Positions 11,311-61,312 of a stretch of DNA of 64,000 nucleotides are shown piece after piece (the first letter of the stretch is position 1; every line of letters starts with the position of its first letter). Made by a program: the position numbers and the translations under genes. Below the pieces are notes generated by a model. The model saw only the letters and a list, made by a program, of their open reading frames with translations. It had not been told where the DNA came from and ran no database searches. This DNA is from Marsupella aquatica (lineage: Eukaryota; Plantae; Marchantiophyta), in the NCBI GenBank assembly GCA_973895155.1, contig OZ316898.1, positions 5,939,079 to 6,003,078 on the forward strand, read 5' to 3'.

Positions 11311-11703
11311 ATGCATGCAAGTAAAACAACTAATACATGCACCTAAAACAATTTGTGCATGCATGCACCTTGTGGCTTGCACATTTGCTCATCTTGCATG
11401 TGCATAAAACAACTAATGCGTGCAAATAAAACAATTTGCATGCATCTAAAACAATTTGTGCATGCACCTTGTGACTTGCACATTTGCTCACCTTGCATGC
11501 ACATAAAACAACTAATGCATGCAAATAAAATAATTTGCATGCACCTAAAATAATTTGTGCATGCGCCTTGTGGCTTACACATTTGCTTACCTTGCATGCA
11601 TATAAAAGGACTATTGCATGCAAATAAAACAATTTGCACATGTATCCAAACAATTTGTGCATGCATCTTGTGGTTTGCATAGTTGCTTATCTTGCATGCA
11701 CAT
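11311..11703. repeat. Four-copy ~99-bp tandem repeat rich in TGCATG/CATGCA
   Basis: Unit approximately ATGCATGCAAATAAAACAATTTGCATGCACCTAAAACAATTTGTGCATGCACCTTGTGGCTTGCACATTTGCTCACCTTGCATGCACATAAAACAACTA, repeated four times. Confidence 0.9.
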
Positions 11704-12549: not shown

Positions 12550-15500
12550 ATGGCTAGATTTGGAGGAGTGAAGTTTGAGGTGGAGAAGTACGATGATCAT
12601 ACTGATTATTTGCTCTGGGAGAAGGAAGTTCTACGGGCCATGGGCTTACTCATCTACTTTCATCACGAGAGCAGTATGATGGATAGGAGCAGATGATTGC
12701 TGTCAATGCAGTGATGCTATATCTCAAGCCGCACATCATCAAGCAACTGGATGATTATGCGGATTGCGCGTCATTGTTCAAGGCTCTAAGAGAGAAATAC
12801 TACTGGGAAGATGCGTCAGATCGGCTGTACAAGAAATCTCTCTTGATGAGTCTTAGGCTCAAGGAAGGGAACAAGATGTAGGATCACTTGGATGAGTTTG
12901 ACAGTCTAGCGGTGGATCTGTTTAAACCTGGGAAAACGAGTTGAAGATGAGGATAAGGCCTTGCTTCTGCTAAGCTCCTTACCGCCGTCATATTAGGGCT
13001 TGAAACAGATGCTCTTGTATAGAGATCTGAAGTCCATTTCGTATAATGAGGTGGTGAGCTCTTTACTATTTGATGATGCTCAGAAGAAGCTAGGTCAATC
13101 ACAGACAGCATCTTCTCCTAGCACTACGCTCAATGTGAACAAGGGAAGAGCAGCGCAGTGCACGAATGGACAGAACAGGTTTAGATCTACATCACGGGGG
13201 AGATCTAAATCCAGAGAGAAATCGCAAGAGAGAAAGCCTCTTGCATGTTGGAATTGTGGCAAGCCTGGCCACATGAAAAGGGATTGTCGAGTAAAGGTCC
13301 CTATTGCATCTGCTAACGCAACATCGAGCTCGCATGAGGTAGATTTACTCGATGATGATGACATATTGTGATGTCAAGGTTATGCTCTCAATGTAGTGTC
13401 AAATCCAGGTAGTGATGACTGGATTCTAGATAGTGCATGTAATTTTCACATTTGCTCTAGGAGAGATTTTTCAGTTCTTACACGGTTTCCAACGGGTCAG
13501 TGTTGATGGGAAATGGAATCCCATGTCAAGTTGTTGGACTTGGATCTGTAAGATTTCAGATGTTTGATGGTGTTGTAAGAACGTTGAGGAATGTGAGACA
13601 TATTCCCAGCATGATGAAAAATCTCATTTCACTTGGAGTTTTAGAGGCAAATGGTCATCAGTGGAGTTCTGCTAATGGTGTCCTTCAGGTTTCAACTGGT
13701 ACTAAAGTTGTATTGAAGGGAAAGAGACATAACAATCTATACATTTTGGAGGGCAGTGTAGTCTGTGATGAAGCCAATGTAACCTTATCTCATGAGGAGA
13801 CGGCCCGGCTGTGGCACTTCCGTTTGGGCCACATGAGTGAAAAAGGTTTGGCTATTCTTCAGAAGAAAGGATTACTTTCTAATTTGCAATCTTGTAAGTT
13901 GGAATTTTGTGAGCACTGTGTGTTAGGGAAGCAACACAGGAAACCCTTTGGAGTTGGAACTCACACCAGCAAGGAGGTACTTGAGTATGTACATAGTGAT
14001 GTGTAGGGTCCAGCCCCTACTCCCTCACATTCTGGACTGTTATACTATGTCACGTTCATTGACGATTACTCAAGGTATGTGTGGATATACTTTCTACACA
14101 ATAAGTCTGATGTTTTTGCCACTTTTAAGGAGTTGAAAGCCCAAGTTGAGAATCAGACTGGTAATAAGGTGAGATATCTATGATCGAATAATGATGGTGA
14201 ATACAGTTATGGTGAATTTGGAACGTATTGTAAGGAACAGGGGATTACCCGCTATCTCACAACAAGTTATACTCCTCAGTAGAATAGTGTTTCTGAGAGA
14301 CTTAACCGAACACTATTGGACCGCTCGAGGAGTATGTTGAGTCAATTATGCTTACCACATGAGTTTTGGGCTGAAGTTGTAAACATTGTAGCTTATTTGG
14401 TAAATTTTTCTCCATCCAGTTCTATTGGATTCAAGACGCCATTTGAAATGAGGTACGGGCATCCAGCAGATTACTCATATCTTAGGATTTTTGGATGTGA
14501 TGCTTATGTGCTTACACCTGCCCAACTTCGATCCAAGTTGGAGTCCAAGTCGAAGAAGTGCATTTTCCTTGGCTATCAGAAAGGTGTGAAGGGTTATAGG
14601 TTATGGGATCCAGTAACCTGTAAACTAATTGTCAGTAGAGATGTGTCCTTTAATGAGTCCAGATCATCAAAGGAGGGGGAGAGTTCTCAGGACTCCCATA
14701 CTGACAAGGGGAAATCTCCCATCCCGGACCGGGTTGAGGGGGAGATTAGTCATGATGCAGTTCATGACAGGAGAGATGGAGAAGCTTCGGGCTTGGAGCT
14801 GGTTCTTATGATGGAACAAGAGGAGCAGATTGTTGTTGGGGTACCTCAAATTCAACCAGCAGCAGCAACAGATCGGCCTGAGTCATCTACTAGAAGAACT
14901 TCCAGCCGTTCTACTAGAGCTCCTACCAGGTATGGTCAATGGGCAGACTCATCTAAGCTAGATGACATTGACATTGCACCTGAGGATGATGATATGGCTT
15001 TGATTTTGGATGAAGGAGAGTCTTCTTCGTACAGTGAGGCTTGTGCTTCAGAGCAGAAGCATGAGTGGAATGCAGCAATGCAGAGGGAGTTACAATCTTT
15101 GAGTGACAACAAGACATGGGAGCTGGTGGAGCTTTCAAGAGGTCAGCAAGTGGTGGACAACAAGTGGATTTACAAGTTGAAGGACAGTCCTTCAGAGGGT
15201 GGAGATAAGATCTACAAGGCAAGGCTTGTTGCCAAGGGGTTCACTCAGGAGAAAGGAGTGGACTACAATGAGGTCTTTTCACCGGTGGCTAAGTATTCCA
15301 CAATACGGATCTTGTGTCAGCTTGTTATGTTTTTTGGTTTGGTGATGGATCAGATGGATGTTGTTACTGCTTTTCTCTATGGCAACTTGGAAGAGTTGAT
15401 CTTCATGAGACAGCCACTAGGCTTTATGAAGAAGGGCCAAGAGAACTTAGTTTGCAGATTGCTCAAGTCCTTGTATGGATTGAAGCAGTCTCCCAGACAG

Positions 15501-16589
15501 TGGAACAAGCGGTTTGATGATTTCATGCTTGCTCAAGGTTTTACAAGGATGGTGTATGATCCTCGTGTGTATACAAAATCAGTCAAGAATGATGTATTTG
15601 GTTTCATCATTCTTGTTGTCTATGTGGATGACATGTTGATTGTGGCTAAAGATCAATCTGAGGTTGACAGTCTCAAGGCAAAATTGAGTGTTGAATTCAT
15701 GATGAAGGATCTTGGTAAGGCCAAGAGGATCTTAGGGATGGAGATTTTTAAAAACTCTGAGACTGGACAGTTGTGCTTGAGTCAAGGCTAGTATGCGAGG
15801 AATGTACTTGCACGATTCAACATGGAGAACTGTAAGCTAGTGAGTATTCCTTTAGCTTCATATTTTAAGTTATCATCGGCTTTCTCTCCTACGGATGCCG
15901 TGGAGAAAGGTCTGATGGCTAAGATTCCTTATGAGAAGGCAGTAGGCAGTCTGATGTATTTGATGACTTGTACTAGGCCTGACTTGGCCCTAGCGATGGG
16001 CAAGGTTAGCAGATTCATGTCAAATCCAGGGAAGGTACATTGGGAAGTTGTGAAGTGGATTCTCAGGTATCTGAAGGGAACACAGGACTATAGATTACTA
16101 TTTCATAAAAGATCAAATAGAACGTTAGTTGGCTATGTAGATTCTGACTATGGAGGCTGTCTGGATACAAGGAGGTCTACAACTGGGTTTGTATACACTT
16201 TTGGAGGAGGATGTATCAATTATGAATCTACCTTGCAGAAGTGCATATCTCAGTCTACTACAGAAGCAAAGTATATTGCAGCAGCAGAAGCAGCAAAGTA
16301 AGCAATTTGGTTGGATAAGTTGATCGCGGAGATGGGTTTAGAGCATGGCAAAATGACTCTAAACTGTGACAGTCAAAGTGCTATTCACTTGGCTGCTAAC
16401 CAGGTGATGGATAGCAGGGTAAAGCACATTGATATCAGGTACCATTTTATCAGGCAAGCAGTGTCTGATAAAACTTTTGAGCTAGTCAAGATTGATGGAA
16501 AGCTCAATCATGCTGATGCTTTTACCAAAGTGATTCATTTGGAGAGTTTCTCAAGACACCGTGCTACTTTGCAGGTTTTGCAATTGTAG
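12550..16589 (+). pseudogene. Disrupted gag-pol polyprotein of copia element 1
   Basis: Motifs: KFEVEKYD (gag start), CWNCGKPGHMKRDC zinc knuckle, WILDSA protease, LWHFRLGH, HSDV integrase, YVDD RT, YVDSDYGG/CDSQSA RNase H. Several in-frame stops (e.g. VWG read as V*G at ~14004, LRSD read as L*SN at ~14180, Q to stop at 15789) and frameshifts. Confidence 0.93.
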
Positions 16590-17140: not shown

Positions 17141-17810
17141 GTTTTTCCCTTGATTGGGTTTTTGGCCTGTGGGACCTTGTCTCCCAGTTGGTTTAGCGCC
17201 CCCACTTTTTGGCAGTTTGATTGGCTGAACTTTCAGTTCAGCTTTGCGATGGGGGGCCCAAAAATGCCTCCAAACCTTTTTTCTGCGCATACCATACTGG
17301 GCATACTTTTCTCCAAAATAGAGTGTATACTACTAAGGAGAATGCATTGGTAGAACTTAAACTTTTGTGACCATTTCTTGGGTCCATATCGGGCATACTT
17401 TTCTCCAAAATAGACTATACACTACTAAGAAGAATGCATTTGCAACAGTTCAGCTTTTTTGACCAAACCTCTTGGGTCACCGGCCTCGTATATTTTTGTC
17501 ATGGGTCTATTCACATTAAAAGCCTGTGCATTCAGGCTCGCGGGTTTAGAGTAGTTCCCACCAATTCTTCCTCTTAGAGAGACTACTGCAGTACGTATGG
17601 GTGCACTGGGTTTAATGGGTTTAAGGCCGTCCCACCAAAACTCTCTGGAGAAAGTACTGCAGTATTTATTGGTGCAATGGGTTTAGTGCGTTTGAGGGTG
17701 GCATTGTCGTCAGCCTGAGGGAGGTCACTGTGGGCATTTCTCACAACTACTTCGCATTGATTGTTCGAGAAGTTGATTTTCGAGATACATTCGCATGCCG
17801 AGGTACAGAT

Positions 17811-20278
17811 ATGGCCTCTTCGAATACGACGCCAAAGAAAAAGGGAAGGCTTGAAGCTTTGGAGAAAAGACTGGCGACGACTCCCCGGCCCTCGTATTCC
17901 CCTTCTCCTTCCCCAATTCGCCCAACATTCTCAACACCTCAGCGAGGTAAGAATTTGTGGTGTATGTTTGATAATTATGCCAATGCGGTATCATTTGGAA
18001 GTTTAGTGATCAACGTGGTTTTGGATCGCAATTCGTTTCCTGATTTTGTTTACCTCTTTGAAGGGGACCAATTTGGTTGCTTTGCTTCGGCAGTGCTGTC
18101 GTTTCTTTCCATGGACAGGCTGAGATTTATGATTTTGTGCTGTGGGATGAATCGGATGCCGCCCAAACTGGCAGTGATGCGGCATACGCCAAGCTCTGTC
18201 CTTCCGTTCTAAATGGTCCGTTGTCTGCGAACCTTCAGGTGACTGATGAGTTTAGTTCTCCCTCATCCTCCTCTGTCTCTCCACCTTTGCTGCTTACTCT
18301 CTACTTTCAGCAATGAATCATTTGTCAAGGAACAGCATGTACGGTCGTGAGAGTTGCCTCTGTTCAAAACAGTGAAGTGCCCACCCGCTCACAGAAATTC
18401 ATTTTGTCAAGGGAGGACGAGCCTGACAATTCTGAGTTCAGATTTCGGGTCTAGTGTTAGGATTTGATAAGATTTATTTTTTCTGTATTCTCACAGTCAT
18501 TGCGCTCTCCTCTAATCCTTTCCTTGTTTCGAAATCTTCATTGAAAAGAGTGACATTAAAGGATTCTCACAGTCACTTTCCTTGTTGCGAAAGAAGCTTC
18601 ATAGAAATACAGAAAAAATAAATCTTCAAGGGTTGACACAACACTTGAAGATTCTCTTTTCCTTGTTGCGAAAGAAGCTTCATTGATCTCTAAAATCTGT
18701 TAATTTGAGTGTTCAATGTGTATGGAAACTGCTGAATTAGTTGAAGAAGAGTGGCGCATTAAAAGCATGGTGACGGCTGTGGTAGACAGGAATTCTTATG
18801 CTGAGTGTTCTGCAGATTTGCTATTGTCTCTTTGCGTCAGAAACAGTGTCTGTCAAACACTTGGGGCAGGAGTAAAACTGAAGCTTAAGGGGAAGAGTTT
18901 TGAGAATGATTTATCTTCAACAATCCCATCACGTGCGAATAAACTCTTCTAGGTATAGTGGAAACTAAGGAGAGTGATTGGATAAGGGTGGCTCAGTGAA
19001 GCACATGACGATGGTTGTATTAAAGAGTAGTTTCCAATTTGACGAAAAAGCAGATCGGTACTTGCCTTGTCCTGGTGGAATGAAAGACATTCCACCAATT
19101 AGTTCACACATGAACATGAGTTGAGGGGAAACTGAAGCTCTGTAAGGTGATGACGATTGGTCTCCTCAGTTAAAGCAGGGACAACGATTGAAGCATCTGC
19201 TGAATCTGAAGTCAAATCGATGCTTCAATGTCTGCGTGTTACAGGCATGATGTATATCAACTTCTGCACGACATGTGGAGAAATTACACTGAGGGTCTCA
19301 TGGCCACTTGCGGGTAAAGCACCAGTGAATATGAAGCTTAGCAACTGCCAGTTCTGATTAGCAAATCTCCAGTGGGTCATTGTCTTCATTTCAACCAATG
19401 ATCGATGTTCCACAGCATCATGCTCGTTTTAAGATTTCGTCTTACGGCAGTTATTTCCGAAACATCCTTGGCACCTAGATGCTGTCGTCTTAGAGTCGGT
19501 TCAGACATGTCAGGCTAGATTGTGTGATCAGGAACAATGCAGCCATGACGCAGTCCCGTCTTCTTGCAGCCGATCTTCACGGGGCAGTTCTGGCTGGTCG
19601 GTGCTCTATCACGTTGGGCTTCTGTTATTCCCAGTGTTGGTCTAGTTGCATTGTGTTACCTTTTACCTCGAAGTTCGTCATCCACTTAAGCTTTTTCTAA
19701 ACCTTGGTCTTCTGTGTCTTCCAGTGGTCGATTGCAAGAACCCAACACTTATTGGAATACAAGGTTTCATGATTAGAGAAACATCGAAGACCTTTGGGTT
19801 AATTAGTTCTAATGACAAATTTTCAGGTTTGACTTCACCTCCGGAAAGCTCGATTCCTAGTTCTTTCCGTATTTGTGACATAATTTGACATGTGTTTCGT
19901 TCTGAAACTTAATGCTTTGAACTCTTTTGGGGCTTTTGTGGTAAAGTCCCACTGCACTTGCCATTATCTCTTCCACAACTTGTTATCTGGTTTGTCAATG
20001 TGATTTTGTTGGTTTGTCCTTAGGAATCGTATTCTTCTCACACCTTCCCTGTCTTTCTTGCTACTTTACATTTCTTGCAGAAAAGCTCATCTATGAGAAC
20101 CTCAATTTCTTTCGAGTGGCCTCAAACATCGTTCAACCATCAGAAATTCTGACCAGATCGTTTTGCAGTGATTCCAAAAGCAGGATCTACGTTCAGGCTG
20201 AAGGTGAAGAACACGATATTCACTTTGTTTGGTAGCGGTTTAGGTCCAAGAGGTGCAACAGCAACAAACAAAATCTAA
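17811..20278 (+). CDS. POP4: Ribonuclease P/MRP protein subunit p29 (RPP29/POP4), multi-exon; middle exons uncertain
   Basis: Exons give MASSNTTPKKKGRLEALEKRLA..., DAAYAKLCPSVLNGPLSANLQ, HDVYQLLHDMWRNYTEGLMATCG (~19246-19313), RLLAADLHGAVLA, VVDCKNPTLIGIQGFMIRETSKTFGLISSNDKF and VIPKAGSTFRLKV...FTLFG, stop at 20276-20278. ADLHGA / G-x-x-x-RET / VIPK are the p29 family signature. Confidence 0.88.
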
Positions 20279-21260
20279 AACTCGATTTCTCTTCCAACTT
20301 TATTTTTACCATAGCATCTTTGAATTGCCCTTTCAAATATTCTTTCTGGGAGTAGTACATGATCCCCGATGATGATAGAGTTAGCAGCAAACAATCTCAG
20401 GTTAGGAGATCAGTGCAACTGATAACACCACTTGGGAGCGGCATGCGGATAAAGTTATAGCCGAGTTCACTCCATTTTCGAAGTGTAAAGAATTGTGTAG
20501 GAACGTTGTGAGCTCACAGCGATGTCTTCTACACCAAGTCAGAAAATTCCTCTATGGTACGTGACTACGATAGGATGTGGAAGTGACTGTACCTCATTGA
20601 CAGGCCAAGGTGTCATGAAAGAAATGTGAGCTTGGCGTCATTCGCTGATGTTTGTTTGCTTTCAATTTCTCGAGACGTTAAGAATTACAAAGCTTTGTCC
20701 TCCCCTTCGTTACAGATGTGATCCAACTACCCAACCACTTGTTCAGTTTTGAGCAACTACAATGTATCTATGGAATACCGTTTCCCCCGGACCTGGCTCC
20801 GAAGAAATGCACTCTCACCTTAAGCCCCAACTTGTTGTTCCCAACAAACAGCGCTAATTCTACTGTGGCATCCTATCCAAGTGGTACATTTGTTTCTCCT
20901 AGTGATCCATACAATGTATATGCATCCGTAACGACACCCTGAACGACTGAATGCTGCTAAGGGCTCCCGCTCTAAAGCTCGGAATCCTGTTGTCAAGATG
21001 AAATTGTTGTCATATGGAAGCTGGCTGTGGTGCAGTCTTTCCTATCATCAGAAGATGGCAACGGTATAGAAATTCTACTCTGCCTGTAGAGAAGACGGCA
21101 ACGGTATAGAAGTTCTTCTCTCAAGCCTCCAGAAATTGCTGGAGTGAAGTACAGGCTGTATTGTTGACCGAAACAGCAATGCGGTCTCATATGTTGGAAA
21201 CCCTGAGATGTGGGTTTTCATACTAGAGCAGAAGGTCTCAACCAACTACATGGCACAAAA

Positions 21261-23881
21261 TCAGAAGACGGAGAGAAATTCGTCAAAATCAGAAGAGGAT
21301 GAGTCGTTCTGGTCTTTTCTGAAACTCATTTCCTCGAAGTACCAATCAATGAGTGAGGTCATGGAAATGAAATTTCCTTTTCTCACTTTCAGAAACGAAT
21401 CGACCAAGGCGGGCATGACTTCAGCACACTTCTGAAAATGCCTATCCACAGTCAATTCCCGAAACTTGAGATCTTTCTGGAGCGTGGCTAGTTTTTCCGA
21501 AATCCAATCTGTCCCACGTCCTAGAGTGATCAAAGCTTTGCGACCATCCTCGATCAATCGTGCCATCACCGTCAAACTGCTGGCTTGTTTTTGCCGTCCA
21601 TGCATGTTGTCGGTGAGCTCATTGACCTGTAATTTCAGCTTTTCGAAGATTTCACTCACATATTGACCAATATCCCTGATGGTTGGCAAAGCGTTGGAGG
21701 TCGCTTTGGGTTGCATCTTTTGGGACTTTTTACCTTCAGAAGCTGACCCTACTTTCCCAATCCTTTTGGTTATTTCCTCAGCGTCCTTGTACAGCTTTTG
21801 GACCTTGGCACGGCCAGATCCCGACTCCAGGTCTTGGATCTTTCTGGTTATTTCAGCGTTCAAGTCTGATGCCAACGTGGCCCAGTGTTGAGTGTTCCCA
21901 TCAATCTTGCTCAGATTTTTGAGAGGTTCCCAATCTGACAAACGTCTACTGGTCTCTTTGACGCCTCCCTCTTCCGATGCAGGGGTTCCAAAGTCCTCAT
22001 GTGTCAAGTCAGGCTTATTTAGAAATTTCCAGACTTCCTGCAAATTGCAAAGAACAGATCAAATCTTCTTAGTTGTTAATGACAAAATGCGTGCCCTTTC
22101 TGTTCTAAAAAGCTCTATCCTGCACTGGCCTGGTTCACGCCAAAGATTTACATTTCAGAAGTCTACCCTGTCACACAGAATGTTCGGACTAGGAAGGCTG
22201 CAAGGACAATTCTGGCCCGGATCTTGTCTAGGTCTCAGACGAGGTGTTGGAAATTCAATATACGAATCGAGCACTAGTGCCAACACCTGGAGTAAGTATT
22301 TGCTTTTCGAAAAGTATCCTCCATTTTCAGTAATCAACGCCAAAAGAGTATACCTGCTCATACTGCACGGATTCTTGTCGCTGTATCGTAGAGTGTTCCT
22401 GATTTGGGAATTCTGGAGAGCCACTAATAGTAGTGGGCAGAATTTTCATTTCCCCTTCGTTCTAAGGATCAGATTCAGGACAAAGCATTCAGAGGTGGAA
22501 GAAGGTTTAAGGATAACAAAATTGCCCAAAATTAGCAGTAAATTGCGTACATGACAATGTTAAAGATGGCAAAGTCGTTGCAAAGAAGGATAAGAACGAG
22601 CATAATATTGTAGTTACCTGCTGATATTGTCCGCCGTTCTGTAGCTCGACCGGAGAGTATGCGTGATTCTGACTGGAGAAGGTTTCGTAATAAGTACCAT
22701 ATTGCATAGTGACTGTTTCTCCGGCCTGCGGATCCGCATCAGACGAAAGATTAGAAATAGGAAGAAGCATTCACGATAACAGGAATAGCTCAAAATTTTA
22801 GAGACGGATGGCGTTCCTCTCGGCCTTTCGTAAAATAGAGAATCGAGAGAGACCCATCGTTCGTTGCGTTGGGCAGAGTAAGCCTTTCCCCTTGGGACTA
22901 TATCCAGCTGAGTATAGAAGCTTAGGACTAAGAAAATAGTTTAAGATGACACATACCTCTCAAGAATAGTGATGAATAGCGTTTAGATTATCGAAGTAAT
23001 GGCAAAGAAGGGGAAGAGCTCGCAGAGTAGTACACCTGCTTATGAGACCGGTCTTTCTGTAGCTCTGTCATAGAGTACCCTTCATGTGGAATAAAGGGAG
23101 ACCCATAACCTGTGGTATTGGGCAGAGTGATCATGGTCGCTTCGGCCTGCGAATCCGCACCAGCATGGGAGGTTAACCAGGAAGAAGCTTTGAAGATGAC
23201 AACAAGTGCTCCAATGAAGCGGCAATTGTCTTTAGTAAGAAAGCCTTTGCAGAGAATGGACAGCTACCTACATTGTCCACTTACCCTTGGGTGTGTCGAA
23301 CATTGCCCCTGATCTCTAGCGATATTGGCACTCATCGACTCTTCAGACAAGGGCTGTAGTCCCAAATTTCCGAGCGAGGCGAGAATTTCGCTTTCAGCCT
23401 GTATATCGACATCAGCAACGAAGGTTAGAGATCGTCCTCACAACTACCGTACAGCATCCATTCCAACACGCAATTACTGCAAGGGGTAAGGAATCAAAGA
23501 TCATCGCCTCCAGAGTTACTATCCCTTCGCTCCTGCTAAAGGACTTCAGATCTATGGGCAGCGCAGATGATCTCATTTGCTTCCCCATGAGGTGAGACCA
23601 AAATAGGCATCACCCACTGTGGTCCACTATGTACTAGTGCTGTGCTGACTTTAGTACAGATACTGTGGCACAGAATACCAAACCTGCTCTGGCTTTTCTG
23701 CGTCCACCTCTAGGACAACGCGGAAGCGACCAACGGCGACAATGGTACTGGTGAGAATGCGGAACCTCCGCCGTGCCTCAATCCGTTTTCGCTTTCGAGT
23801 GTCTTCCTCCACATCCGCATCCATCACATCTGCAGGCTGCAAACTCATGCTATACTGCATGGCCTCTGGAATCTGTTCCAT
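21261..23881 (-). CDS. Unknown-family paralog A (~433 aa): N-terminal CaM-binding-like helix, three ~36-aa repeat exons, C-terminal helical domain
   Basis: Exons 23881-23684, 23146-23036, 22725-22618, 22461-22354 and 22037-21261. All introns are GT-AG and phase 0, and the frame is open throughout. Splice sites are conserved with paralog D. A non-coding 5' exon ends at about 24725. Confidence 0.75.
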
Positions 23882-26800
23882 TCTCGATTTTACTGTCTGC
23901 CCTAGAGTCTGCCAATAAAAAACGTATCAACTCACGATCCAGCTACCATAAAGCCGTCCAACAAACATTCGAGCTTGATGCCCCTGACTGCCATTGAGCA
24001 ACAGCGAGGGCAGTATAAACGTCCAGAACTGAGATCTCAAAGAGCTAAACCGCAAAGAGGAGTCTCAAATTGAGCTCATAGAATCAGCCCCGAAATACAA
24101 ATGCGACCGGTATCTGAACAAGCAGATGTACAGAGAAAAAGACAATCCATTCCGAATTTCAGGAGCGAGAAGGAAACTCCCAAGGGAAATCGTCATCATG
24201 ACTGTGTCGCATAGATTTCATGGAAAGATTAATCCGAAAGAGAACAAACAGCCAGGTATTGTGTGTACGTATGAATCGGCGTGAAGGTGAACTCTTCTTC
24301 TATGCCGCCTGCATTAGTCTGATTGCTTTACTTCGGCAAGAGAAGACTAGGGGCATTCTCTCAATTCCCACCAGCACGAGACAGGACACGAAGGTTCATC
24401 CACAACCCAACTCCGCCTCCCCCTCCCCCTTTTCTCTGGACGCTAAACCCTTCGGGTTGACAAGGTGCCCTAAAGGCAACACAAGCAAGGCGAGACTTAC
24501 AACACGCACAACAACTCTTGGAGCCAGAGATGGGAGTAGGACGGACTGAACCCATCACAGACCAAGGCGATTCAAGAGCAACATCAGTATTTTGCAGTCA
24601 GTAACTACCGGCTTTGTTAACTAACAACAAGAAAACCATATCGGAAGAGAAAGTTTCTGACCAGCTACTTGGAAAGGACCACGAAATTGCTAATTGAAAA
24701 GCAAGCTAAAGAGTACAGTAGTACCTGAAATGATGAATCAGATCAACGCAAACGCCAGAGACTGCACACTTCTGCACAACAGTGACAGACAATGGTTCAA
24801 TGGTGAGTCGGATAAAATGCGGCTCTCTTACTCGTCGTTCGCCCAAAATCAGTCGAGCAATCCCCACCCAAACGAGCTGTGCCTGCGCCTGGCAATTGCA
24901 GAACTTTCCGCCGTGAAGCGAGTGAAATCCTGAGACCGTGAGATCCCAAATTCTGAGAGCTCGCTGATCATGACCAACCAGTCTTCTGTCCTCTCTACTT
25001 ATGTTGTAGCCAACAAGAACCCCGCGAAAGCCAGATTGCCGACATTGTTTGACGCCTGTGACACGGTCAACCAGAGGTTTCTTAGAAGCTTCTTCGAATT
25101 GATTTTGCTCGACTGTCTCCTGTGCAGAAGGAGCGTCAATGGCGGCGGCTTTTCCGCCATTGAACTCCGGGCAAAGGACTGATTTTTCGCCCCGGTGTCA
25201 AATGTTACCTTTTGTGAAACACGGATGATGCTACGAGTACTCTTCATATAATTTTGCTAGATATTAATATCTGACGGTTGGATTTCCCTACATTTAAGGA
25301 GGAGCGTTAGATCTGGCTTATTGGGTTGTGGCTAGGTGTGAAATGGGCCGATGGAACGAAAATGTTTTTTGACTAAAGTGGCCAGCTGTGAAATGGGCTC
25401 ATGGAACACCAAAATCCTAGTAATGTATTTTACTGAAGTGGTTAGGACTTTTCAGTGAGCTGGAATCTATTGTAGCTAGTTTTTGAGACTGAAGAAAGGC
25501 TGGTCCAAAGGTGAATCTATCTGTGCACTGCGCACCAATCATGAATTGTTGGCTTAGATTAATTTCTGATAGTTGGATCTCCTTAGGTTTAAGGATAACC
25601 ATCAGATTTTGGCTTACGGAGTCTATGGCTCCATGGGAAAACTGGCTCATGGAGGACAGAAAACCTAGCAAATGTTTTGCCTGAAGTGGCAGCAACTTTT
25701 CAATGAAATGGAATCTAGTGAAATTTTGCCACTCAGAAAATGCTGGTCCTCGTCAGATGCAGAAAGGTGAACCTACCTGGTTATTCGGTTTGGTTACTGA
25801 GCTGGAAAATACCATGAGGAGTAAATACCTACACCAGGAAGTACCTACACCAGGAAATACGTACACACCACCCTTTTCAAGCCTTTTCAAGGTAACTAGA
25901 GCTAGAGAGTAAATACCCAAACCAGAAAATACCCAAAGAATATATATTTTCTTAGTTAAGTAACGCAAAGAGGAAATACCGGACTAGTAAGTACCCAGCC
26001 AACTTGACCCAGAAAGATGAATGTATATAGAGAGGAGAATGGTGTGTTATATATAATTATTAAAATGATGACATGCATGATAATTTTTTATCATTTCATT
26101 AACATTCAAAGAATATGAATAATACGATAATATGAATAGTACGGTAATATGAATAGTCTTTTCTGGGTTACCGTACCCATCCCCATTCACAGGATAAATA
26201 TATCTTGTTTAAAAATGCGTCAACTACAAGCTAGACTTGGGGGTTAGGTTTCTAGAGTGAAATGTCTCGACTGTAACTCCATGGTCCACCATGTGAATGA
26301 AAAAACTTATGACTATGATGTATGTCAAGTGATAATTATCATACATGCTTCTTTTTATTATGATTTCTATTTACATTAAAAAAATGTATTCTATGGCCCC
26401 ATCATAACATATGTGCAAAGAAAGATGAATGTATATAGAGAAGAGAATGGTGTGTTATATATGATTATTAAAATGATGACATGCATGATAATTTTTTATC
26501 ATTTCATTAACATTCAAAGAATATGAATAGTAAATATACTTTGGTGACAATTTTATTGTACTCTTTGTTATTCACGTTCAAAGAACAGGTAATTGGGGTT
26601 AGTAATTAATAAAACTTTGGGCTGAAGCAACATGAATCAACAAACACCTAGAAGTTGTACATTGCTATGAAACTAGTGTTATTTATTTTGAATTTCACAG
26701 ATTTGATCAGCAATCACTTCCACAACATCGAACGGCCCCCATTCCAGTTGTGTGGCTCTGGTGAGAGTTCGGCAGGGGTCCAAAGTCAAACCAGGCCAGA

Positions 26801-27160
26801 GTGAGTCCACAACAGATCTAGACTGTTGGTGATGCGTACAATGGCATGATGTGAGATGTCAATGCTCTGGAAGTTAACCTGAGTGGCTCCCTCAGTGCCA
26901 TGTTAGTCAATATTTTAGAAGCAACGGCATATTTTAAAATAATGCCAGTTCCTATGGCAATTTAGAAAGTCTCATTTTACAAAAACAAAGCCCCAGCCCA
27001 CTTGTTTATGAAAATTAAAGGAGAGGAAGTCATGTCAGTACAAGACAAGACACCACTAGACCAAAGCAGACCATAGGGCACCAAATTGCAGCAGAGGGAA
27101 AGACCAACACCTCCACCCCCTCACACACAACAAAATAGAAAGACAATTAGTTCGTGGACC
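22450..27160 (-). repeat. Inverted segmental duplication arm; partner ~58300-62700
   Basis: Reverse-complement similarity followed by eye through the exons and introns of genes A/D (high identity) and through about 2 kb of upstream DNA (much lower identity, with indels). Confidence 0.85.
26011..26529. repeat. ~115-bp direct repeat (26011-26120 and ~26419-26529)
   Basis: AGAAAGATGAATGTATATAGAG...TTAACATTCAAAGAATATGAATA appears twice, nearly identical. Confidence 0.85.
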
Positions 27161-28480
27161 TCTATCTGTTTTGATTGTATGTGAGGTATGTGTTGGACAA
27201 TATATGTGAAATAGATAAATGTGTTATAAAATGTGTAACAATGAACATATCTTTATTGAGACTACATGGTGGATCGAATCTGGAGACTAGGCCAGCTGAA
27301 ACTAGTGACCGAGCTGAATATATGAGCAAACCTCAACTAGTTCTGAAGCTGCAACGTGGTGCTCTGAGCTTGTGGCAATCCCAATCGCTTGGGAGTTCAG
27401 CTCTGGAGCCAGCAAAGGTATTTCAATTAGTAATCATGAGCACATTTGAAGATCTAATTGCAGGTTGGAATGGAAATGGAGCTTACCCGAGGACGTAAAA
27501 TATAGCTCTCGTTTGGATCATGTAGAACACCTTTGAACAAAGACCGGACAAACTGCAGTTCAACAATTTCCTTGCCATAATAGTTTTTCGACTCATCCAA
27601 AGCCAGCTATTTCAACAATGGATTTTAGAAAGTAATGCAACACACTTCTCCACGGTATTGCTTAGAGTGAGTAAACCTATGTATCAAGCTTAGGGCCATC
27701 TACATTAATTCTCGCTTGTCTCAAGCAATTGCTGTCTGGTAGGTAGCGGTGGTGGCCAGAGTTGGTTCGCAATTACCTTGTACGCATCTAGTGCGAGGCA
27801 CTTTGGAACCCACGATGCCATCACAATTTAAACCATAGAATTGTCTAGGTTATCACTTTATCTCAATATATATGGTCAGTTCGCAAAACTTTGTTCACTG
27901 GAAGTCTAGTGTTTAGCATAGTTGTCAAGGTTTGGTCACGACAGATTCACGACGGAGACTTTCTAGTAGTCACAGCAGCTTTGACTACTGGGAACTGTAC
28001 CGTGGTACTCTGCCACCAGGACACCGACGCTACCACAGAATGGGTATTTGTTGTACGCCTAGAAGGATTCAATTTTTTTCAAGCAATGGTGGGCAGAGTT
28101 GATTGAGAGGCATTTCATTTTGCGCTGAGGGGATTTCAAGTCCTCAAGAATAATTCTTATCTGAGTAGCTAGATTGCACGATTGATCATACTTCCGGATG
28201 AATGGAGCCTATGTAAGGGGAGGATCGCAGCATGGCCATTTGAAATTGTGTCATCTCGGAGCCTTCCTGTACTTGTCTGATCTTGGGCACGGTGAAGACT
28301 AGGATGCCCTTTTATTAATTTTTTAGATAGCCATACTCTTGCATCTCTCAACAGAGCTCGCTGCCAAAAAACTCATGAGTGTATCATCGATAAATTTCTA
28401 GCCGAGCTGCAAATTGTTACCCTTGAATTGTTTCTTTACCAGAAGTCCAGGAGAGACTCAAAGCATAAAGCCGGGTCAGC

Positions 28481-28483
<3 letters not shown>

Positions 28484-28534
<51 letters not shown>
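28484..28534. repeat. (GA)25 microsatellite
   Basis: Perfect GA run. Confidence 0.95.
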
Positions 28535-28540
<6 letters not shown>

Positions 28541-31500
28541 GCGGCAGGCAAAGCAAGGAAGATTCTAACTAGAGCGTTTAATAGTCTTAGCGCACTCCCT
28601 GTTCTCCCACTCGGCTGTGAAAGTGGAGTGGTTGAAGTATTTGCTTTAGCAGTGACTTAGTCCCGTGAACTTGGTGACCATTGGGTCTGTCTTGTCACTT
28701 TGAGATTGAAACACATTGTTGGTCTCCTCGGACACTCATTTTGTCATTTCATCGATTATTGTTGTTCGAGACTTTGGTGATTCATGACTTGATTGGACCC
28801 CTTCACATTCAATTCTTCCGTTTATTCAATCATTCTTTCCACCTGTTGCGGATTTCGGGTATAAATTGCGGATCACACAGTCCGGTTGGAATCCTTGGAG
28901 ATCAATTGCTCTCATCCTTTCACCAACCTTCGCAATCACATCCTGGCTAGTTTTGGTGTTTCCCTCCCCTCCTCTCTTTCGTTCAATCCAAAGTCGTCTC
29001 TCTATCATTAGTTGCCTCGCTTCTCATGCATCGTTGTGGAGCAAGAGTACTCAACCTCTTCATGGTCAAGTCAATGCCTCCGTCTTAGGTGAGGAGCAAT
29101 GACGTCTTCCTGAATTCCCTTACTCTCAAATTTTTTTGATTCGATATTCATTTGCAGATTGAAGCAATTTCCGAAATTCAATTCCGAGCAGCAATTTCAG
29201 AGCTCTCATTGAGGACTACAGTGATTTCCTCAAGAGAGACTATCATTTGTTAGCCATCATCGAGAATTGCTCTTCTGACTGCCTCTCGTGTGCGGATGAA
29301 CTTGACCTTCCGCTAAAGAAAGAGAAAAAGAGAGAGTCAATCTTGCTTTGCACTCTCTGCACTTGTTCGGAAGGTTAGATGAGTATTCCATTACCTCATC
29401 GCCACTTCTTCTGTCCTCGAGCATGACACGAGGAAATGAGGAAACACGAGGTTACCTTCTGCCCCTGCGGGATTCTTAACTGCCATGCTGTGTTGCTTCA
29501 TTTAATTACTTATTTATTACGGAATTGAAACCACAATTCACAAAAAAGGGTGGGCAGTTGGTTATTTGCGGTAGATAAAATTGAGTTGCGGGCCTACTCA
29601 ATGTAAATAAAACAGTTATTTTTGATTACTTTTTACATGAAGATTTACGGCATGGCGTCCCCAATTTTACCAAAATCCTGTCGCAAACACGAATGTCAAA
29701 GTCATTTTATTTTGTAAACCAAGTCGTTCCTATTTGCAGCGCATCATGATGATGTGGCGCGCTGTGGAGCCAGGAATTTTGGAAGGGACCTCTAGTGGGG
29801 TCCGTAATTAAAGACAAATGTAATCAAGCTATGAGATCTAATAGAGACACAACAAAGTGCTTCCCCCCCCCCACAGACACACACAAAAGACCTTGTTTCA
29901 AGATTAAAAAGATCGAGGGGAAGTCACCCATAGTTACCAAGGTATGTAATTAGCTTCTATGTTAGGCATTTACTCTTAGGTGTAGAGTTATTATGTAATT
30001 GTAGTGAATCTGACCTTAGTCAGGTGCTTGGGGACAGTTAGATGTGTCAGTACATCTACACTAGCAAGATTTAATTAGTGAGAGTAACCTAGGCTTATTG
30101 TTACACAACTAGTTGAGTGATAGGGAGTTAGATCCTTGTTTGTGGTTTCTTGGTATGGCTATGGCTCTTTTGTGTGACTTTTCACGTGAATGTATCATTT
30201 GGTGAGGTGAAGCACCCCATGAACCACATATCTCCTGTAGCGTTACTTGTGTATTCATTGGATGTTGCACATGCATGTGCATACTGTCTATGAGTAATGG
30301 TTGATTTCTCAACATTCTAGGCGGGGTCCTCAAATTTTATAAGTAACTTTCTTATACTGACATTATTCTTAAAAAAAAATGAAAAGTTAAGTGGAAATCT
30401 GTGAAACCCCATAGAAAGGGAGACAAGAGAAGCTAGTTGAAACATTTGCACCCAAGACCTATGAGTCTCTACTCAAGTGAGCTACCACTGAGCCATGCCT
30501 ACTTCGGGTTTCTTATGCATTCTTACAACTACTACAAGTGCTTGTGTCACACATATTAAACATGTGTAAAATGGTTTTACACACAATCCAAACCAAAATT
30601 GGAGCATGACTCTCTAGCTAGGGACTGAGATTTTATGGTTAGGAGTCACCCTTGACCATTTGAGCTGGCCACCAGGTCCCACTCAAGTGGATTATAGCAT
30701 CCAACGTAGTATAGAGGGACTCAGATGGAATCAAGAAAAGGACACTTAAGAAGTACGCTGTCTAAAGTGCACACATAGAGGAATGTGTGGCCATAGGCTC
30801 ATTCTCATGACTTTCGCAAATCAATGATTTGGAAATTGGATGATTAGAAAGCTTTCCAACTAGCCATGGTTGGTTTTCAGTTATTGAGTATTTGAGGAGA
30901 AATCTGCTCAGAATTCTAATTTCTAGTATTTGACTACAAAAAGGTTACCAACAAAATGGGCCAGGCAACAAAATATGGACTTCCTTTTCAACTGCCACAC
31001 TTTGCCTGAATCTTGGGCTTTTAAATTATGCAATTGCTCTTCTGGCTGCAGTCTAGTGCCTACTGATGGAGGCAATTCACTCCAATAGCAACTGGCCAAG
31101 GTCTTGTCCACGACCTCCTCATTTGTCCCATTTTGCAAACACCTCCATCAAAGTACCCATTACACACACACACACACTCTCTGGCTATCTTCCATCACTT
31201 TTGAATGGCCACAGAAGAGGCAAAAGAATCCTCATCCGCTCTGCTATTTTCTGTTGCCGGATGGCATTAAAACTTGAAGTTATATGGGTAGCTTCCTTAT
31301 TTTGAGTCACATCAGCAGTCTCCTGTCACATTGCAAATCATTTACAGTGCCACACATCTAAAGAATCATCTTCCACTACCCACAGGCATCAAAATCTTGG
31401 CTGCCATTTGTCTCCTTTCGCTAAACTAATGTGAAAGATGGCCAAAGCTCCTTTAAACCTCATTGTCACCTAAGGCACAGGATGGCAAAATAGCCCTTTT

Positions 31501-34500
31501 GAACCCCCCCCCCCCCCTTCCTTTTTGTAAGGATTTTTTGTAACTCATTATGGGGACCTGACGAGTGACAATGGTAGTTGAACTTGTATCCTTCTTTTCT
31601 ATATCATAATTAACTAGACCTCCGACATGGTAGTTTAATTCCTTGTGCCTCAATATCCCCTTAAATGTTGCAAATACCCTTCTTGCATTTAAATGCTACA
31701 TGGTCTACCATGGGGACGACCCATACTAACAGACTCCATTATCTGCCTCTTGAATATTAGTATGCATCTTTGCCACTTTCATAGCTACCTGAATCTGCAC
31801 CTGTGTGTACCTCCGTCGCAAGCAATCGACCAGTGTACAATTGTATGCGTCATAGAGGGGTCTACTTTCCTGCAAAAGAAATTTGAAGGGATTAATTGGC
31901 ACACTAGGAAATCTATTGTCTGCGGCTAATGTTTTTAATTCCATCACAATGACGAAGTGTACGCAATGCAACACTGTTCTCATATAATCATCGCATGTGT
32001 AAAGCCAACCAGTGAAATTTCCTCACCCTCAAGGAAATCCTTGCAGCTGAAAAAGCTTGAAACTCGCAGAACCCATTGCCACTACATGGAAGATGCACAT
32101 TTTCATGGGCGCCTGGGACCAATTTTCAATGCCGTTGCGCCCTAGTGTGAACAATCTTTGTGCGGCATAAGCGATCTGCAGCAAGTGAATGATTCTTGTG
32201 CCTCTCTCGCTATGCTGACACACCAACTTTCATCTTGTCTAAGGGGTCACGAGAAATTAAAGCCATTTTAGCCAAAACTCAATATAACATCACTTTTTGG
32301 CACATGAAAAAGAAAGGGACAGAAGAAGTTAATACTGGTGCCTCTGACTTCAAAAGTCTACACTCCAAAAGTGGTTACAGTAGTTATGCTCCCAATGCGT
32401 CACCCTATTGAAAGGCGCCAAGCACAGTTTTGCTTATTGCTTCACTACAATAGTTAGATGCTCACGAATTTGACTACTACTAGCCTGACTACTTGGACAT
32501 AATTATGCTAGGAAGGGGGAAGGGCTCCCTGTACCACTCCCCATCTATTCTTACAAGGATACTCTAAATATCCAAATTCTTGTTACTTGAGATATTAAGG
32601 TCTATGATCAATCTAGAGAGTAGGCCATGATTGAGGGGTACTTTTATCACGAATTATATTATAATGTAGATGCTCCCCTGCTCCTCCCTTCTTATTAAGC
32701 CCTACGTTTTTTTGGTTTGTAGTTGCCCTCCCCTTTTGAGTACCTTGTTTGTCCTTGCTGGACCTCTTTTAGAAGTTTTCATTGAATAGGAAAGTTGAGT
32801 AAGGACGAGATGAGACCGGATATGGCGCACCATGCATTGTGTTCCAATTGGACTGGACCCATTGTACAGGACCGGCGTGCTTTGCGCTGGCCGCCAAGAC
32901 TTCGGAGCTACGCAAACCCCAGAGGCCAGAGATTCATTCCCATCCCGAATCTTCATATTCAGTCACGGAAACCTTCGAATTTTCGGGAAACCTGCCATCA
33001 ATTTTGGCAAAGAACGGGCAGGTAATCATTGTCTTTTGGATGGGAACTCACAGAATCTTACAAGGCAAAAAGAATGGTCAGGTAATCGGTGTTGAGCTAA
33101 CCGTCCGTATATTGGCAATTCTGTCCCAGCTCCTAATTGTATCGATAGATTGTTCACCTTCTGGCCTGAGTGGCGTTTGCCTTTGTACGTTGTCTTTTGC
33201 CTTGAAAATTTCATTGCAATCTATTCATTGAAACGGCATACGCCATCTTTTTATGAGAGCAGAGTGAGTTCGCACGAGCTGCTGCTATGTTTTGCCCAGG
33301 GACTGTCTTCTCCCCTCCTTTTCGGTCTCCCTTTCATAGCTTTGGCGGCGTTTGTTGTTACGAAAAGAACGGAAAAGATCGGTGATTGATTCCGTTTCGC
33401 ATGTAGACTGTCCTAGTCTCGTCATTGCCATACTCATGATTACCAACTAACTGGGCTCCTTTTCACTCGGTCCTACTGCAGCTGACTCGAGCCAAAGTTT
33501 TCTGCGAAATTCTCAGAATTTTCAGTAAATTTGCTCTCTCTTTTCTTTGAGAATCAGAAATTAGTGCAAAAGTTAGAATCTCTGCGTACGTCACTGTCTC
33601 TTTTGTTCAAGCTGTTTCAATGTTAGCGCATTCCATGTGTCTGAGAGAGGTTGTCCCTGTCTCTAATAAATGGTGGAAAGGCAGCCAAGTGACTGTCCAG
33701 TACCGGGTCCGGTACATGATTATGTAAGAAGAACATGCAGTCATTTGTGAGAAGGAGGACCCCAGCCACATCACTTTACGGTACAAATGTCGAAAGGACA
33801 TTTCTCCCATAACTTTTCACAAAACGAGATGGTTGGGCTCTACTTTTTAAAGAAAAATGAGTTGGGGTATAGACTATTGAGCAGTCGATGGGCAGAGAAA
33901 CCACTGGCAAATAACAGCCCCAACAGCCATGCTGCCTTGAGCTCGGACCAGTTGGTCACCTCTATGATACCGGAACCTAAGTCGCCACCTATTTCGCATG
34001 TAAGGCCCGATTCCAGAGGAAACAAGCTGTTTCTTCGAAGGGAATTCTTTGTAATTGTTAGACCAAGCGCGCTTTAAACGCTTTAGACAATATCAATCGA
34101 TCGAGGGCCGTGTGTTCCTAATGCCAGGCATGAATTTAGAGCTATTGGAGACAATTTTCCTTTGGCTTTCGGAGAGCCCAGCAGTTTTTTGATTCATGCC
34201 AATCAGACGACTTGAGGACAAGAAACGATCAAATCATAAAAGAAAATTACTACGTGAAAAACCGAGCTGATAAAGAGAGAAACAAACGAGTGAACTCTAT
34301 CACAGCACAAGCTTCGTATCTGTTGAATGCGGTCGTTGTTTCTGAAACCATCTTTCGTCATTTGAATGGAGGCTTAGAGAAGTGGTCTAGCAGCATGAGA
34401 GCAACTTTATCTACTGGGCATACTGATTTGGGTTTTACTGCTATCAAACAAAATTGCGGAAATTCCCTTTACAACTACCATCTGCTCGGGTGGAAGCGGG

Positions 34501-34758
34501 TCAATATTATATCTCATCCCTGGGAACTTCTCATTGGTAAGATGATAAGCTGCATGTATTTCCATAAATCTGGACAGTTTTCAGTAAGAAGGTAGAGAAA
34601 TCGAGAAAATTTCTTGCAGACTGAAGTATCTCCTCTTGGATTTCCCGCTTTCTAATGAAGATGGTATAGGTCGTCGTGCAGTTAAGCTATCAATCACGGA
34701 AGTAGGCCACAAAATTTCTACACAATTATAGACTGAAAGGTTTCTGGGAAGTCTCTGG

Positions 34759-35458
34759 TTATACTCCCTCCGTCGTCTGTAAAAGTTCGAGAGGATCGAA
34801 GGGTTGAGCACAAATAACATGAATATTGGCACAGCGGCCATTATACCAGTTTAGGGTTCCGCGTATAATTAATCAGATCAGCACTTTGGAACTCTGATCT
34901 GTTTCAATTCGTTGTGCCCTGCAGAGCGTTGTGCCCTGCAGAGCGATTATAATTTACCGGGCAGACTTACTGTGCAAATGACGCAAAGAAACCACAAAAC
35001 TTGTCCGTAGCTTTATTTCCATATCAATCCTTCAATGTGAAATGTGGGGTCTTTGAACATGACACCCTGATGCAATCTAATAATAAATCAGCAAAGTGCC
35101 ATTTGCCACCAGTGTAGTGTGCTGCTTGAGGTAACTAATGACTATAACCTCCTCTACAGCTTCCTTTATCTTCCATGTTCCATATGTGCTCGATCGATCA
35201 CCTCTCAAGCCCTTCATGCGACAATGCATGTTTGTCAAGCTCGATCGTATTGGATAGATGTCGTAGGAGAGAAGGGCGAACCTGCTGCTCTTTCTCTCCC
35301 TCCACCTCCATTACCGACTTGAACCGGTTAACAGCTACGAGAGTAGTGGTGGCAACACGGAACTTCCTCAATAGTGCCTCAATTCGTGCGCTCTTGCGAG
35401 TGACGTCTACCGGAGGGTCCTCCTTCAGAATCTCGAGCGGAGGACTCTTGAAATGCAT
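34759..35458 (-). CDS. Unknown-family paralog C: short (~64 aa) product that is essentially only the CaM-binding-like module; 3' structure uncertain
   Basis: Exon 35458-35282 gives MHFKSPPLEILKEDPPVDVTRKSARIEALLRKFRVATTTLVAVNRFKSVMEVEGEKEQQ and ends at the same phase-0 CAG|GT as A/D. The next good acceptor (TTTTACAG, 34777) adds TTEGV then a stop. I found no downstream exon for the helical domain. Confidence 0.55.
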
Positions 35459-45340: not shown

Positions 45341-45782
45341 GCAATTGGTTTTAAAGACTCCCGGCAAGTCCCTTCCTCTGCAGTTACTCCAAAGTTCTAC
45401 CAGACTTTTCAGTTCTCCACTCAATAAGGTGTTAGCCTTCATAGCTCCTTTGTAGATTACCTTTTTGGTCCTTGTTCCTTCCTCCTCTTTTCTTGGGACC
45501 CTTGGCTTGTTTTTCTTGGGGGCCATTCCCCTCTTTTCCCTTCCCTTCATTTCTTTTCCTTCCCTTCCGTTCCCTTCCCTTCCTTTCTTTCCCTTCCCTT
45601 CATTCAGTTGCTTTGCATTTGTAATCATGTCTCCCGGTTCCGCGGATTTCCCCTTGGGCACTGTGATATATAGGAAAGAAGGGATAATTATGATGGCGTG
45701 TGCAGAGGAGCCGGGTTTCTGTGCTGATGCTACTACTGCTGATGCAGCACTGGGTTATGAGCTCTCTCCGGCAGACTTGGAG

Positions 45783-46163
45783 CAATCCCTGGAGTCGTCG
45801 TCGTACTTGCGAACAATCCCTGGAGTCGTCGTCGTACTTGCGAACGAGATTGCCGCTGCTGCTGCTGCTGTGCTACTGCTGCCGGTTCTCGCTTGTCTTT
45901 GGGGATCGGGAGTGCTTTAAGGCGCGTGGATTCTGCCGGTTTGCTCAACCCAATCGAGACACTTTTGAGACGAGCCGACAGTTCTTTCAGAGCTGCTCTG
46001 GTCCTGGTGTGAACTGCTACTGCTACTGCTGCTGCTGGTTCTCGCTTGTCGTTGGGGAGAGCTTTAAGGCGCGTGGATTCTGCTGGTTTGCTCAACCCAA
46101 TCGAGACACTTTTGAGACGAGCCGACAGGTCATTTAGAGCTTCTCTGGTTCTGGTGTGAACTT
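45783..46163. repeat. Nested tandem duplications (30 bp x2, then ~145 bp x2) upstream of gene B
   Basis: CAATCCCTGGAGTCGTCGTCGTACTTGCGAA appears twice; GCTTTAAGGCGCGTGGATTCTGC...GAGACGAGCCGACAG...GGTGTGAACT appears twice. Confidence 0.85.
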
Positions 46164-60925: not shown

Positions 60926-61312
60926 ACATAATACCTTGGTGTTCCGTTCTCTTTCGGATAATCTTTCCATGAAATCTATGCTGCAGCGACACAGCCATGA
61001 TGACGATTTCGCTTGGGAGTTTCCCTCTCGCTCCTGAAATTCGGAATGGTTCTTCTTTTTCTCTGTGCTCTCTGCTTGTGCAGATACCGGTCGCATTTGT
61101 ATTTCGGGGTAGATTCTATGAGCTCTATTTGAGACTACTCTTTGGGATTGAGCTCTGAGATCTCAGTTCTGGACGTCTATACTGCCCTCGCTGTTGCTCA
61201 ATGGCAGTCAGGGGCATCAATCTCTAATGTTTGTTGGACCGCTTTATGGTAGCTGGATCGTGAGTTGATAAGTTTTGATTGGCAGACTCTAGGGCAGACA
61301 TTAAAATCGAGA

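Follow-up and report, generated by a model that had tools for sequence, protein, structure and literature searches.

Four copies of a gene family in the window

The window, i.e. the whole stretch of 64 kb that was analysed, is nuclear plant DNA with introns and copia elements and a GC content of 0.436. When local family HMMs were run over it exactly four first exons appeared, together with three large last exons belonging to copies A, B and D (Table 1). The first-pass annotation had described four paralogs by short peptides, and a six-frame search recovered each of the peptides A, B, C and D exactly once, the stretch 23684–23881 being exon 1 of copy A. In all four copies exon 1 starts with an ATG and has an AG/GT donor right after a short acidic stretch. 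The gene models were taken exon by exon, and full-length analyses were performed on the orthologs present in databases, not on spliced proteins from the window.

Table 1. Position of the identified exons, motifs and other features in the window.
Feature	Position	Strand	Details and basis
Copy A exon 1	23684–23881	-	66 codons, first ATG to CAG/GT donor; ORF
Copy A calmodulin-binding-like helix	23708–23776	-	Residues 36–58; anchors Phe40, Ile47, Phe53; family alignments
Copy A exons 2–6 (span)	22354–23398	-	Approximate limits; tblastn with pieces of P0014, acceptor/donor context
Copy A exons 2–6 (approximate)	23306–23398, 23036–23146, 22814–22897, 22618–22728, 22354–22461	-	
Copy A last exon	21261–22037	-	Helical C-terminal domain and stop codon; ORF
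Copy C exon 1	35282–35458	-	Motif 35306–35374; donor retained
Copy B exon 1	47434–47667	+	Motif 47563–47631; anchors Trp, Ile, Met
Copia retrotransposon in intron of copy B	48812–54054	+	Interrupts the gene, outside the motif
Copy B last exon	54706–55284	+	C-terminal domain and stop; HMM E 3.6e-63
Copy D exon 1	61313–61477	+	Motif 61385–61453
Copy D B-like 3' part	62707–64000	+	Last exon from near 63746, cut by the window end; HMM E 3.6e-18

Gene A is open and, when compared by tblastn, collinear exon by exon with its ortholog in the leafy liverwort Calypogeia fissa (P0014). Its exon 1 is collinear with residues 1–60 of P0014 with 80% identity, the start of the orthologs matching the second ATG of copy A at 23860, and its last exon is 82% identical to residues 245–505 (local HMM E 9e-74). 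In between, exons 2–6 are repeated phase-0 exons encoding a disordered linker, and the equivalent region of P0014 has a pLDDT <50. Copy C consists of exon 1 alone, no C-terminal domain being found downstream of it in the local family HMM scan of the window. Exon 1 of copy B shows 56% identity over the exon to P0015 of C. fissa. The copia element inside this copy has two 299-nt LTRs that are 100% identical and an intact ORF of 1422 codons (49333–53601), and the homology between copies D and B is broken exactly at its position. Copy D is a chimera; according to blastn the region 61100–62707 is 87% identical to A, while from exactly 62707 to 64000 the sequence is 79–83% identical to B.

An exhaustive family search, in which an alignment of the last exons of copies A, B and D was run against 1.84 billion representative proteins, revealed only 13 family proteins. 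The named matches are all from C. fissa, where they are listed as "unnamed protein product", and no homologue was found in Marchantia; the family is confined to leafy liverworts. The orthologs are about 400–630 residues long. Their exon 1 helix is followed by a variable linker, in which every one of the repeated exons closes with Glu/Gln-Gln, and then by a helical C-terminal domain of ~190 residues; the motif is situated 30–50 residues from the N-terminus in the full-length orthologs. One member, P0008, is an uninterrupted ORF of 506 codons, including the motif, on a contig of 2457 nt, whereas the genomic genes contain several introns, and it is therefore regarded as a transcript, which indicates that the family is expressed, with splicing as inferred. 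The RNase P/MRP p29 gene next to the family is also syntenic with C. fissa, with a DNA identity of 70–83% there, so that the window belongs to a relative of that species and not to the species itself.

The N-terminal motif and the C-terminal domain co-occur in most family members. In P0007, from a third locus in C. fissa, a deletion of 10 codons removes motif position 1, in its neighbour P0002 (also C. fissa) the motif is both frameshifted and substituted, and in P0010 it is wholly absent. Either the helix is dispensable in some copies of the family or those copies are decaying.

Pfam searches with exon 1 (E up to 10) and with the large exons gave sub-threshold coiled-coil noise only, and the full-length orthologs (E up to 0.1) showed neither a kinase nor any other domain, which bears out the earlier statement that these proteins have no kinase domain. 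Nor was an ATPase domain found in the orthologs of 400–630 residues, and the DKTGT and GDGxND motifs of P-type pumps are missing from every frame of the window, as is any match to an IQ consensus regex in its six frames. A word-index protein search with the last exon of copy A returned no match, the full-length relatives exceeding the length window of that search, and the protein atlas gave no usable match.

An AlphaFold2 model of P0014, made with a family alignment of 20 rows, predicts a helix at residues 18–54 (pLDDT 57–68) followed by a disordered linker and a helical C-terminal domain at 290–470 (pLDDT about 80–90), the latter modelled as a long antiparallel helical hairpin or bundle. When the fold of this domain was compared with known structures only generic long helical hairpins were returned (best Foldseek E 0.02), with a VIA Z of about 10, below the ~13 needed for helical proteins, and hence no assignable fold family. 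The model of the last exon of copy A, for which the alignment had three rows, reached a pLDDT of 39 and was unusable.

Composition and conservation of the exon 1 motif

The residues proposed in the first-pass annotation as the core of a 1-8-14 motif are found in all four copies of the window. Position 1 is an aromatic residue (F/F/F/W), position 8 is aliphatic (I/V/L/I) and position 14 is hydrophobic (F/F/F/M), while Ala10 and Arg13 are common to all four, as are Arg2, Val17 and Glu19. The basic lead-in had also been ascribed to every copy, but it is full only in A and D, with three basic residues, partial in C, with two, and weak in B, where there is one and where Arg-Arg follows directly after the Trp at position 1. 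The proposed divergence of the flanks holds only in part: the N-flanks of A and D are identical, and between A and C the identity is 41% in the flank and 55% in the motif. Since A and D are 89% identical, the window effectively contains three independent copies; independent support comes from the orthologs in other genomes that carry the motif.

When the four window copies were aligned with three C. fissa genes and one transcript (alignment A3, n=8), 8/8 family members had a bulky hydrophobic residue at each of the anchor positions 1, 8 and 14. In this alignment position 1 is F/W/L, position 2 is Arg in all, position 8 is I/V/L, position 10 is Ala (Val once), position 13 is Arg (Leu once) and position 14 is F/M, followed by R/K at position 15, L/M/V at position 18 and Glu (Lys once) at position 19. 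Exon 1 ends with the motif block at the same phase-0 donor in the A-type gene, the B-type gene and the divergent paralog of C. fissa, and a transcript-like contig from a different sample has the same block as well.

Checking the motif against rules for calmodulin targets gave a divided result. The anchors at 1, 8 and 14 are in place, but a strict regex allowing FILVW at position 14 misses copy B, whose Met14 lies outside that set, and the net charge of the 14-mer is +2 in A, C and D, the strict textbook range being +3 to +6. Calculated over the 18-mer that includes the lead-in, the net charge is +5 to +6, and a lead-in of three basic residues singles out A and D only. About 12/20 residues of the segment are hydrophobic, and its hydrophobic moment is modest, 0.31–0.38 for the motif 18-mers of A, C and D and 0.15 for B, with sliding-window maxima of 0.45–0.53 in A, C and D.

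The bare 1-8-14 spacing gave 2175 matches in the 101,722 six-frame residues of the window (21 per 1000) and is so frequent that the spacing alone is no evidence. Likewise, eight 1-8-14 matches, one row of which is repeated, have been published for a single small viral protein (PMC6890265). The 15-residue pattern common to the copies, on the other hand, occurs four times in the six-frame translation and these occurrences are the four copies themselves.

Substitution rates were calculated according to Nei-Gojobori. Between copy A and its C. fissa ortholog dN/dS is 0.43 in the motif and 1.14 in the N-flank, and between copy B and its ortholog the values are 0.13 and 0.83, respectively; for C compared with A the motif has a dN/dS of 0.31. 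The motif is thus under purifying selection (dN/dS 0.13–0.43) while the preceding stretch is near neutral.

Likeness to solved calmodulin-binding peptides

An exon 1 profile made from the eight sequences of A3 was compared with 177,635 distinct PDB sequences. The top match was 4aqr_D (E 3.2e-4), the regulatory domain of Arabidopsis ACA8 crystallised with calmodulin, a chain of 57 residues in which both calmodulin sites were matched by the profile. Further matches were full-length ACA8 (8qmp_A, E 0.032) and an ACA8 peptide (2m73_A, E 1.1), and a profile of only the four window copies already had 4aqr_D as its best match (E 0.0018). The best E of any single stretch against ACA8 was 0.1, and PDB searches with the single exon 1 sequences of A and B gave no relevant match. 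Two skeletal MLCK M13 peptides were matched by the A3 profile at E 0.21 and 0.33, positions 1, 8 and 14 aligning on the Trp, Val and Phe of M13. Among the A3 matches were also unrelated proteins, namely DdmD (E 0.015) and a bacterial NADH dehydrogenase-like protein (E 0.74).

Eight further PDB rows match near the C-terminal end of the chain, their alignments stopping at the profile position where M13 also stops; seven are yeast proteins and one is a proteasome-maturation-factor chain described as an MLCK2 fusion. As the matches in these rows presumably lie at or past the native C-terminus of the chain, they are probably due to a purification tag derived from M13.

Taken at the profile level the likeness to calmodulin-binding sites is real but modest, and its closest solved relative is the plant protein ACA8, not the animal MLCK to which the spacing had been referred in the first-pass annotation. 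Like the motif of the family, site 1 of ACA8 (4aqr, 8qmp, 2m73) is situated in the N-terminal region, and the two share an aromatic, an aliphatic residue and Phe at 1-8-14, Arg2, Ala10, Arg13 and Arg15 as well as Leu and an acidic residue at 18–19, while an upstream Ile-Glu pair and a downstream acidic tail can be aligned. Unlike ACA8 the family has no P-type IIB Ca2+-ATPase body, and it has one site with no counterpart of the second calmodulin site. The pump N-terminal autoinhibitory domain PF12515 matched neither any exon 1 (E up to 10) nor any ortholog (E up to 0.1); only the comparison of the family profile with the ACA8 chain is significant. This likeness may reflect common descent or convergence.

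The reference to MLCK spacing is right insofar as the motif is in register with the Trp-Val-Phe anchors of M13 (2bbm, 3kf9), with an alignment over 17 residues in which Ala7, Ala10, Asn12 and Arg13 are common to both and in which the B-type copies are the most M13-like; it fits less well in the closer likeness to ACA8, in the charge of the 14-mer and in the Met14 of the B type. M13 has moreover an anchor at position 5, where the family has Ser or Thr, and in MLCK the segment follows the kinase domain, of which it is the autoinhibitor, whereas in the family it is N-terminal and has no kinase. The regulatory segments of CaMKI/CaMKII and smooth-muscle MLCK have a basic lead-in of the Ala-Arg-Arg-Lys type, a hydrophobic register and a final Arg plus hydrophobic residue. 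Lead-in and register resemble those of the family, which differs by the absence of a kinase domain, but none of these segments was among the PDB matches of A3 at E up to 10.

A complex with plant calmodulin, a check suggested in the first-pass annotation, was modelled. When metagenome contigs were scanned with a degenerate DNA pattern, a plant-type calmodulin ORF of 149 codons was identified (L007:440-886:-), the best single-domain PDB match of which is Arabidopsis CaM7. Another contig, L043, encodes a vertebrate-type calmodulin that may be animal or human and was left out of the test, and no calmodulin gene was found when viral contigs were scanned. The L007 calmodulin together with four Ca and residues 25–66 of copy A gave a score of 0.69, compared with 0.19 for the best of three controls. 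The mark set for this score had been reached by 51/78 solved complexes and by 2/108 mismatched pairs in a calibration set without peptides or riding ligands. Contact agreement between the runs was at least 87% and the pLDDT of the copy A partner at least 67. The predicted interface on copy A comprises residues 32–33, 36–54 and 56–57, i.e. the motif; on the calmodulin side it involves hydrophobic pockets in each of the two lobes, the Phe at position 14 being placed against residues of the N-lobe. As complexes of this kind are already solved, such a pass shows likeness and not binding by copy A; the model supports candidate binding to plant calmodulin, although the pass may reflect likeness only.

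A candidate calmodulin docking site and its alternatives

The helix encoded by exon 1 is probably a docking site of the 1-8-14 type for Ca2+/calmodulin or a calmodulin-like (CML) protein. The same had been proposed in the first-pass annotation for the N-terminus of these proteins, and the proposal gains in silico support from the likeness of the profile, the selection on the motif, the predicted helix and the complex model. Exon 1 would encode a basic, partly amphipathic helix around which calmodulin, or a calmodulin-like protein, would wrap in a collapsed antiparallel mode, presumably in its calcium-loaded form. The aromatic residue at position 1 would then be received by the C-lobe and the Phe or Met at position 14 by the N-lobe, with the aliphatic residue at position 8 placed between these two anchors. 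The helix would in this way head a liverwort-specific protein of ~500 residues, continuing through a disordered linker, made of repeated exons, into a long antiparallel helical C-terminal domain. In addition, it may keep the C-terminal domain, or else a partner, switched off until the helix is removed by Ca2+/calmodulin; the regulatory helix of ACA8 binds two calmodulins as well as the pump core (PMC6255812), which makes a combined docking and autoinhibitory role a reasonable analogy.

Other readings of the helix can be put forward, all of them less well supported than calmodulin docking. It could be an intramolecular or partner-binding element, packing onto its own C-terminal bundle or serving oligomerisation, with no role for calmodulin and a likeness that is merely that of a generic basic hydrophobic helix. 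This would agree with the hydrophobic richness of the segment and the low moment of the B type (0.15), with a C-terminal hairpin or bundle able to take up a further helix, and with the joint occurrence of motif and C-terminal domain described above. It is nevertheless rather unlikely, since the PDB search returned calmodulin-binding peptides specifically and not bundle helices in general, since copy D pairs an A-type helix with a B-type C-terminal domain, which argues against a tight co-adaptation of the two, and since the helix of copy C is constrained with no C-terminal domain at all. Such a role would in any case be compatible with calmodulin binding, as the helix of ACA8 does both (PMC6255812). 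The same compatibility applies to the proposal that the basic stretch serves as a nuclear localisation signal or as a helix binding acidic lipids of a membrane, for which the Lys/Arg cluster just before the helix in the A type, fitting a simple monopartite signal, and the charge of the 18-mer (+5 to +6) can be cited. The B-type copies, however, have no basic cluster, and what is conserved throughout the family is the hydrophobic anchors and Arg at positions 2, 13 and 15; as the acidic residues on both flanks suit a membrane anchor poorly and it is the hydrophobic register that is under purifying selection, this reading is considered improbable.

A chance similarity, arising in a fast-evolving and possibly decaying gene cluster and leaving the helix with no specific function, appears highly improbable. 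The bare motif is indeed very common and the family has few members, restricted to one lineage and unannotated, with one copy truncated, another harbouring a fresh retrotransposon and some paralogs lacking the motif. Against this stand a motif dN/dS well below that of the flank in two independent ortholog pairs, an exon 1 boundary that has been kept at all loci and the transcript-like contig in which the motif is part of an uninterrupted ORF of 506 codons.

With calmodulin docking as the preferred reading the origin of exon 1 can be considered. One speculative and on the whole unlikely scenario is that exon 1 was captured from the N-terminus of an ACA-type calcium pump, where it was the calmodulin-binding and autoinhibitory module, and re-used as a portable single-exon switch that by phase-0 exon shuffling came to gate an unrelated, liverwort-specific helical domain, in which case the A/B chimera of copy D would be a sign that the module is still swapped between genes.

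Calmodulin-binding helices of the basic amphipathic type are common, so that a further one is unsurprising in kind. What is new is the unannotated family that carries the motif, the type of motif being already known. Calmodulin targets have hardly been mapped in bryophytes, and the family has no annotation anywhere. The likeness to ACA8 offers a concrete model, in which an autoinhibitory helix would be displaced by calmodulin. If binding is true, the family would represent a lineage-specific output of calcium signalling in leafy liverworts and, at the same time, a compact natural case of a calmodulin-binding helix that forms a self-contained exon and recombines between genes.

Copy D is a recombinant gene

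Comparison of the paralogous copies at the DNA level identified copy D (window positions 61100-64000) as a recombinant gene. Over its first 1.6 kb, including the introns, it shares 87% identity with copy A; from position 62707 onwards the DNA is B-like (79-83% identity). In copy C, exon 1 has remained open, its donor is intact and its motif is under constraint; neither the family C-terminal domain nor a linker exon was detected in the 11 kb downstream of it (24100-35281, minus strand). Copy C may be a relic, or its exon 1 may be spliced to something unrelated.

Mobile elements and other reading frames

Two copia-type elements were found in the window. The one residing in copy B carries two LTRs of 299 nt each, 100% identical, and an intact ORF of 1422 codons (49333-53601); it probably inserted very recently and may still be active. 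In the second element the recognisable pieces are scattered across several ORFs.

Copia-type elements and their positions in the window
Element	Position	Remarks
Copia retrotransposon	48812-54054	Within intron of copy B
Second copia-like element, degraded	13000-16301	Gag zinc-knuckle, integrase and reverse-transcriptase pieces

An ORF at 1372-1710 (minus strand) ends in a tail of Gly-Gly-Phe-Pro-Gly repeats that recalls the C-terminal end of co-chaperones interacting with Hsc70. In two stretches, 11330-11680 (minus strand) and 45700-46137, the ORFs have internal tandem repeats of ~35-45 codons; these stretches probably represent repetitive sequence and not genes. Outside the window, one of the metagenome contigs retrieved with a calmodulin DNA pattern (L043) codes for a calmodulin of the vertebrate type; this contig may derive from an animal or from humans and was set aside.

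Synteny with Calypogeia fissa and the repeated linker exons

The region 17757-20348 is syntenic with the RNase P/MRP p29 subunit gene of the leafy liverwort Calypogeia fissa (70-78% DNA identity), which there adjoins the A-type orthologue, the gene order A-type followed by p29 being common to both liverworts. At a third C. fissa locus (L005:10001-12121 and L005:18333-20907) one family member has lost the position-1 anchor of the motif through a deletion of 10 codons, and in its neighbour the motif is both frameshifted and substituted and the C-terminal domain is duplicated in tandem.

Three or four mutually similar phase-0 exons, each ~35 codons long, make up the linker (22354-23146 in the window; 10977-12141 in L002, a sequence outside it); every one closes with Glu/Gln-Gln followed by a GT donor. 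These repeats look like the product of frame-preserving exon duplication.
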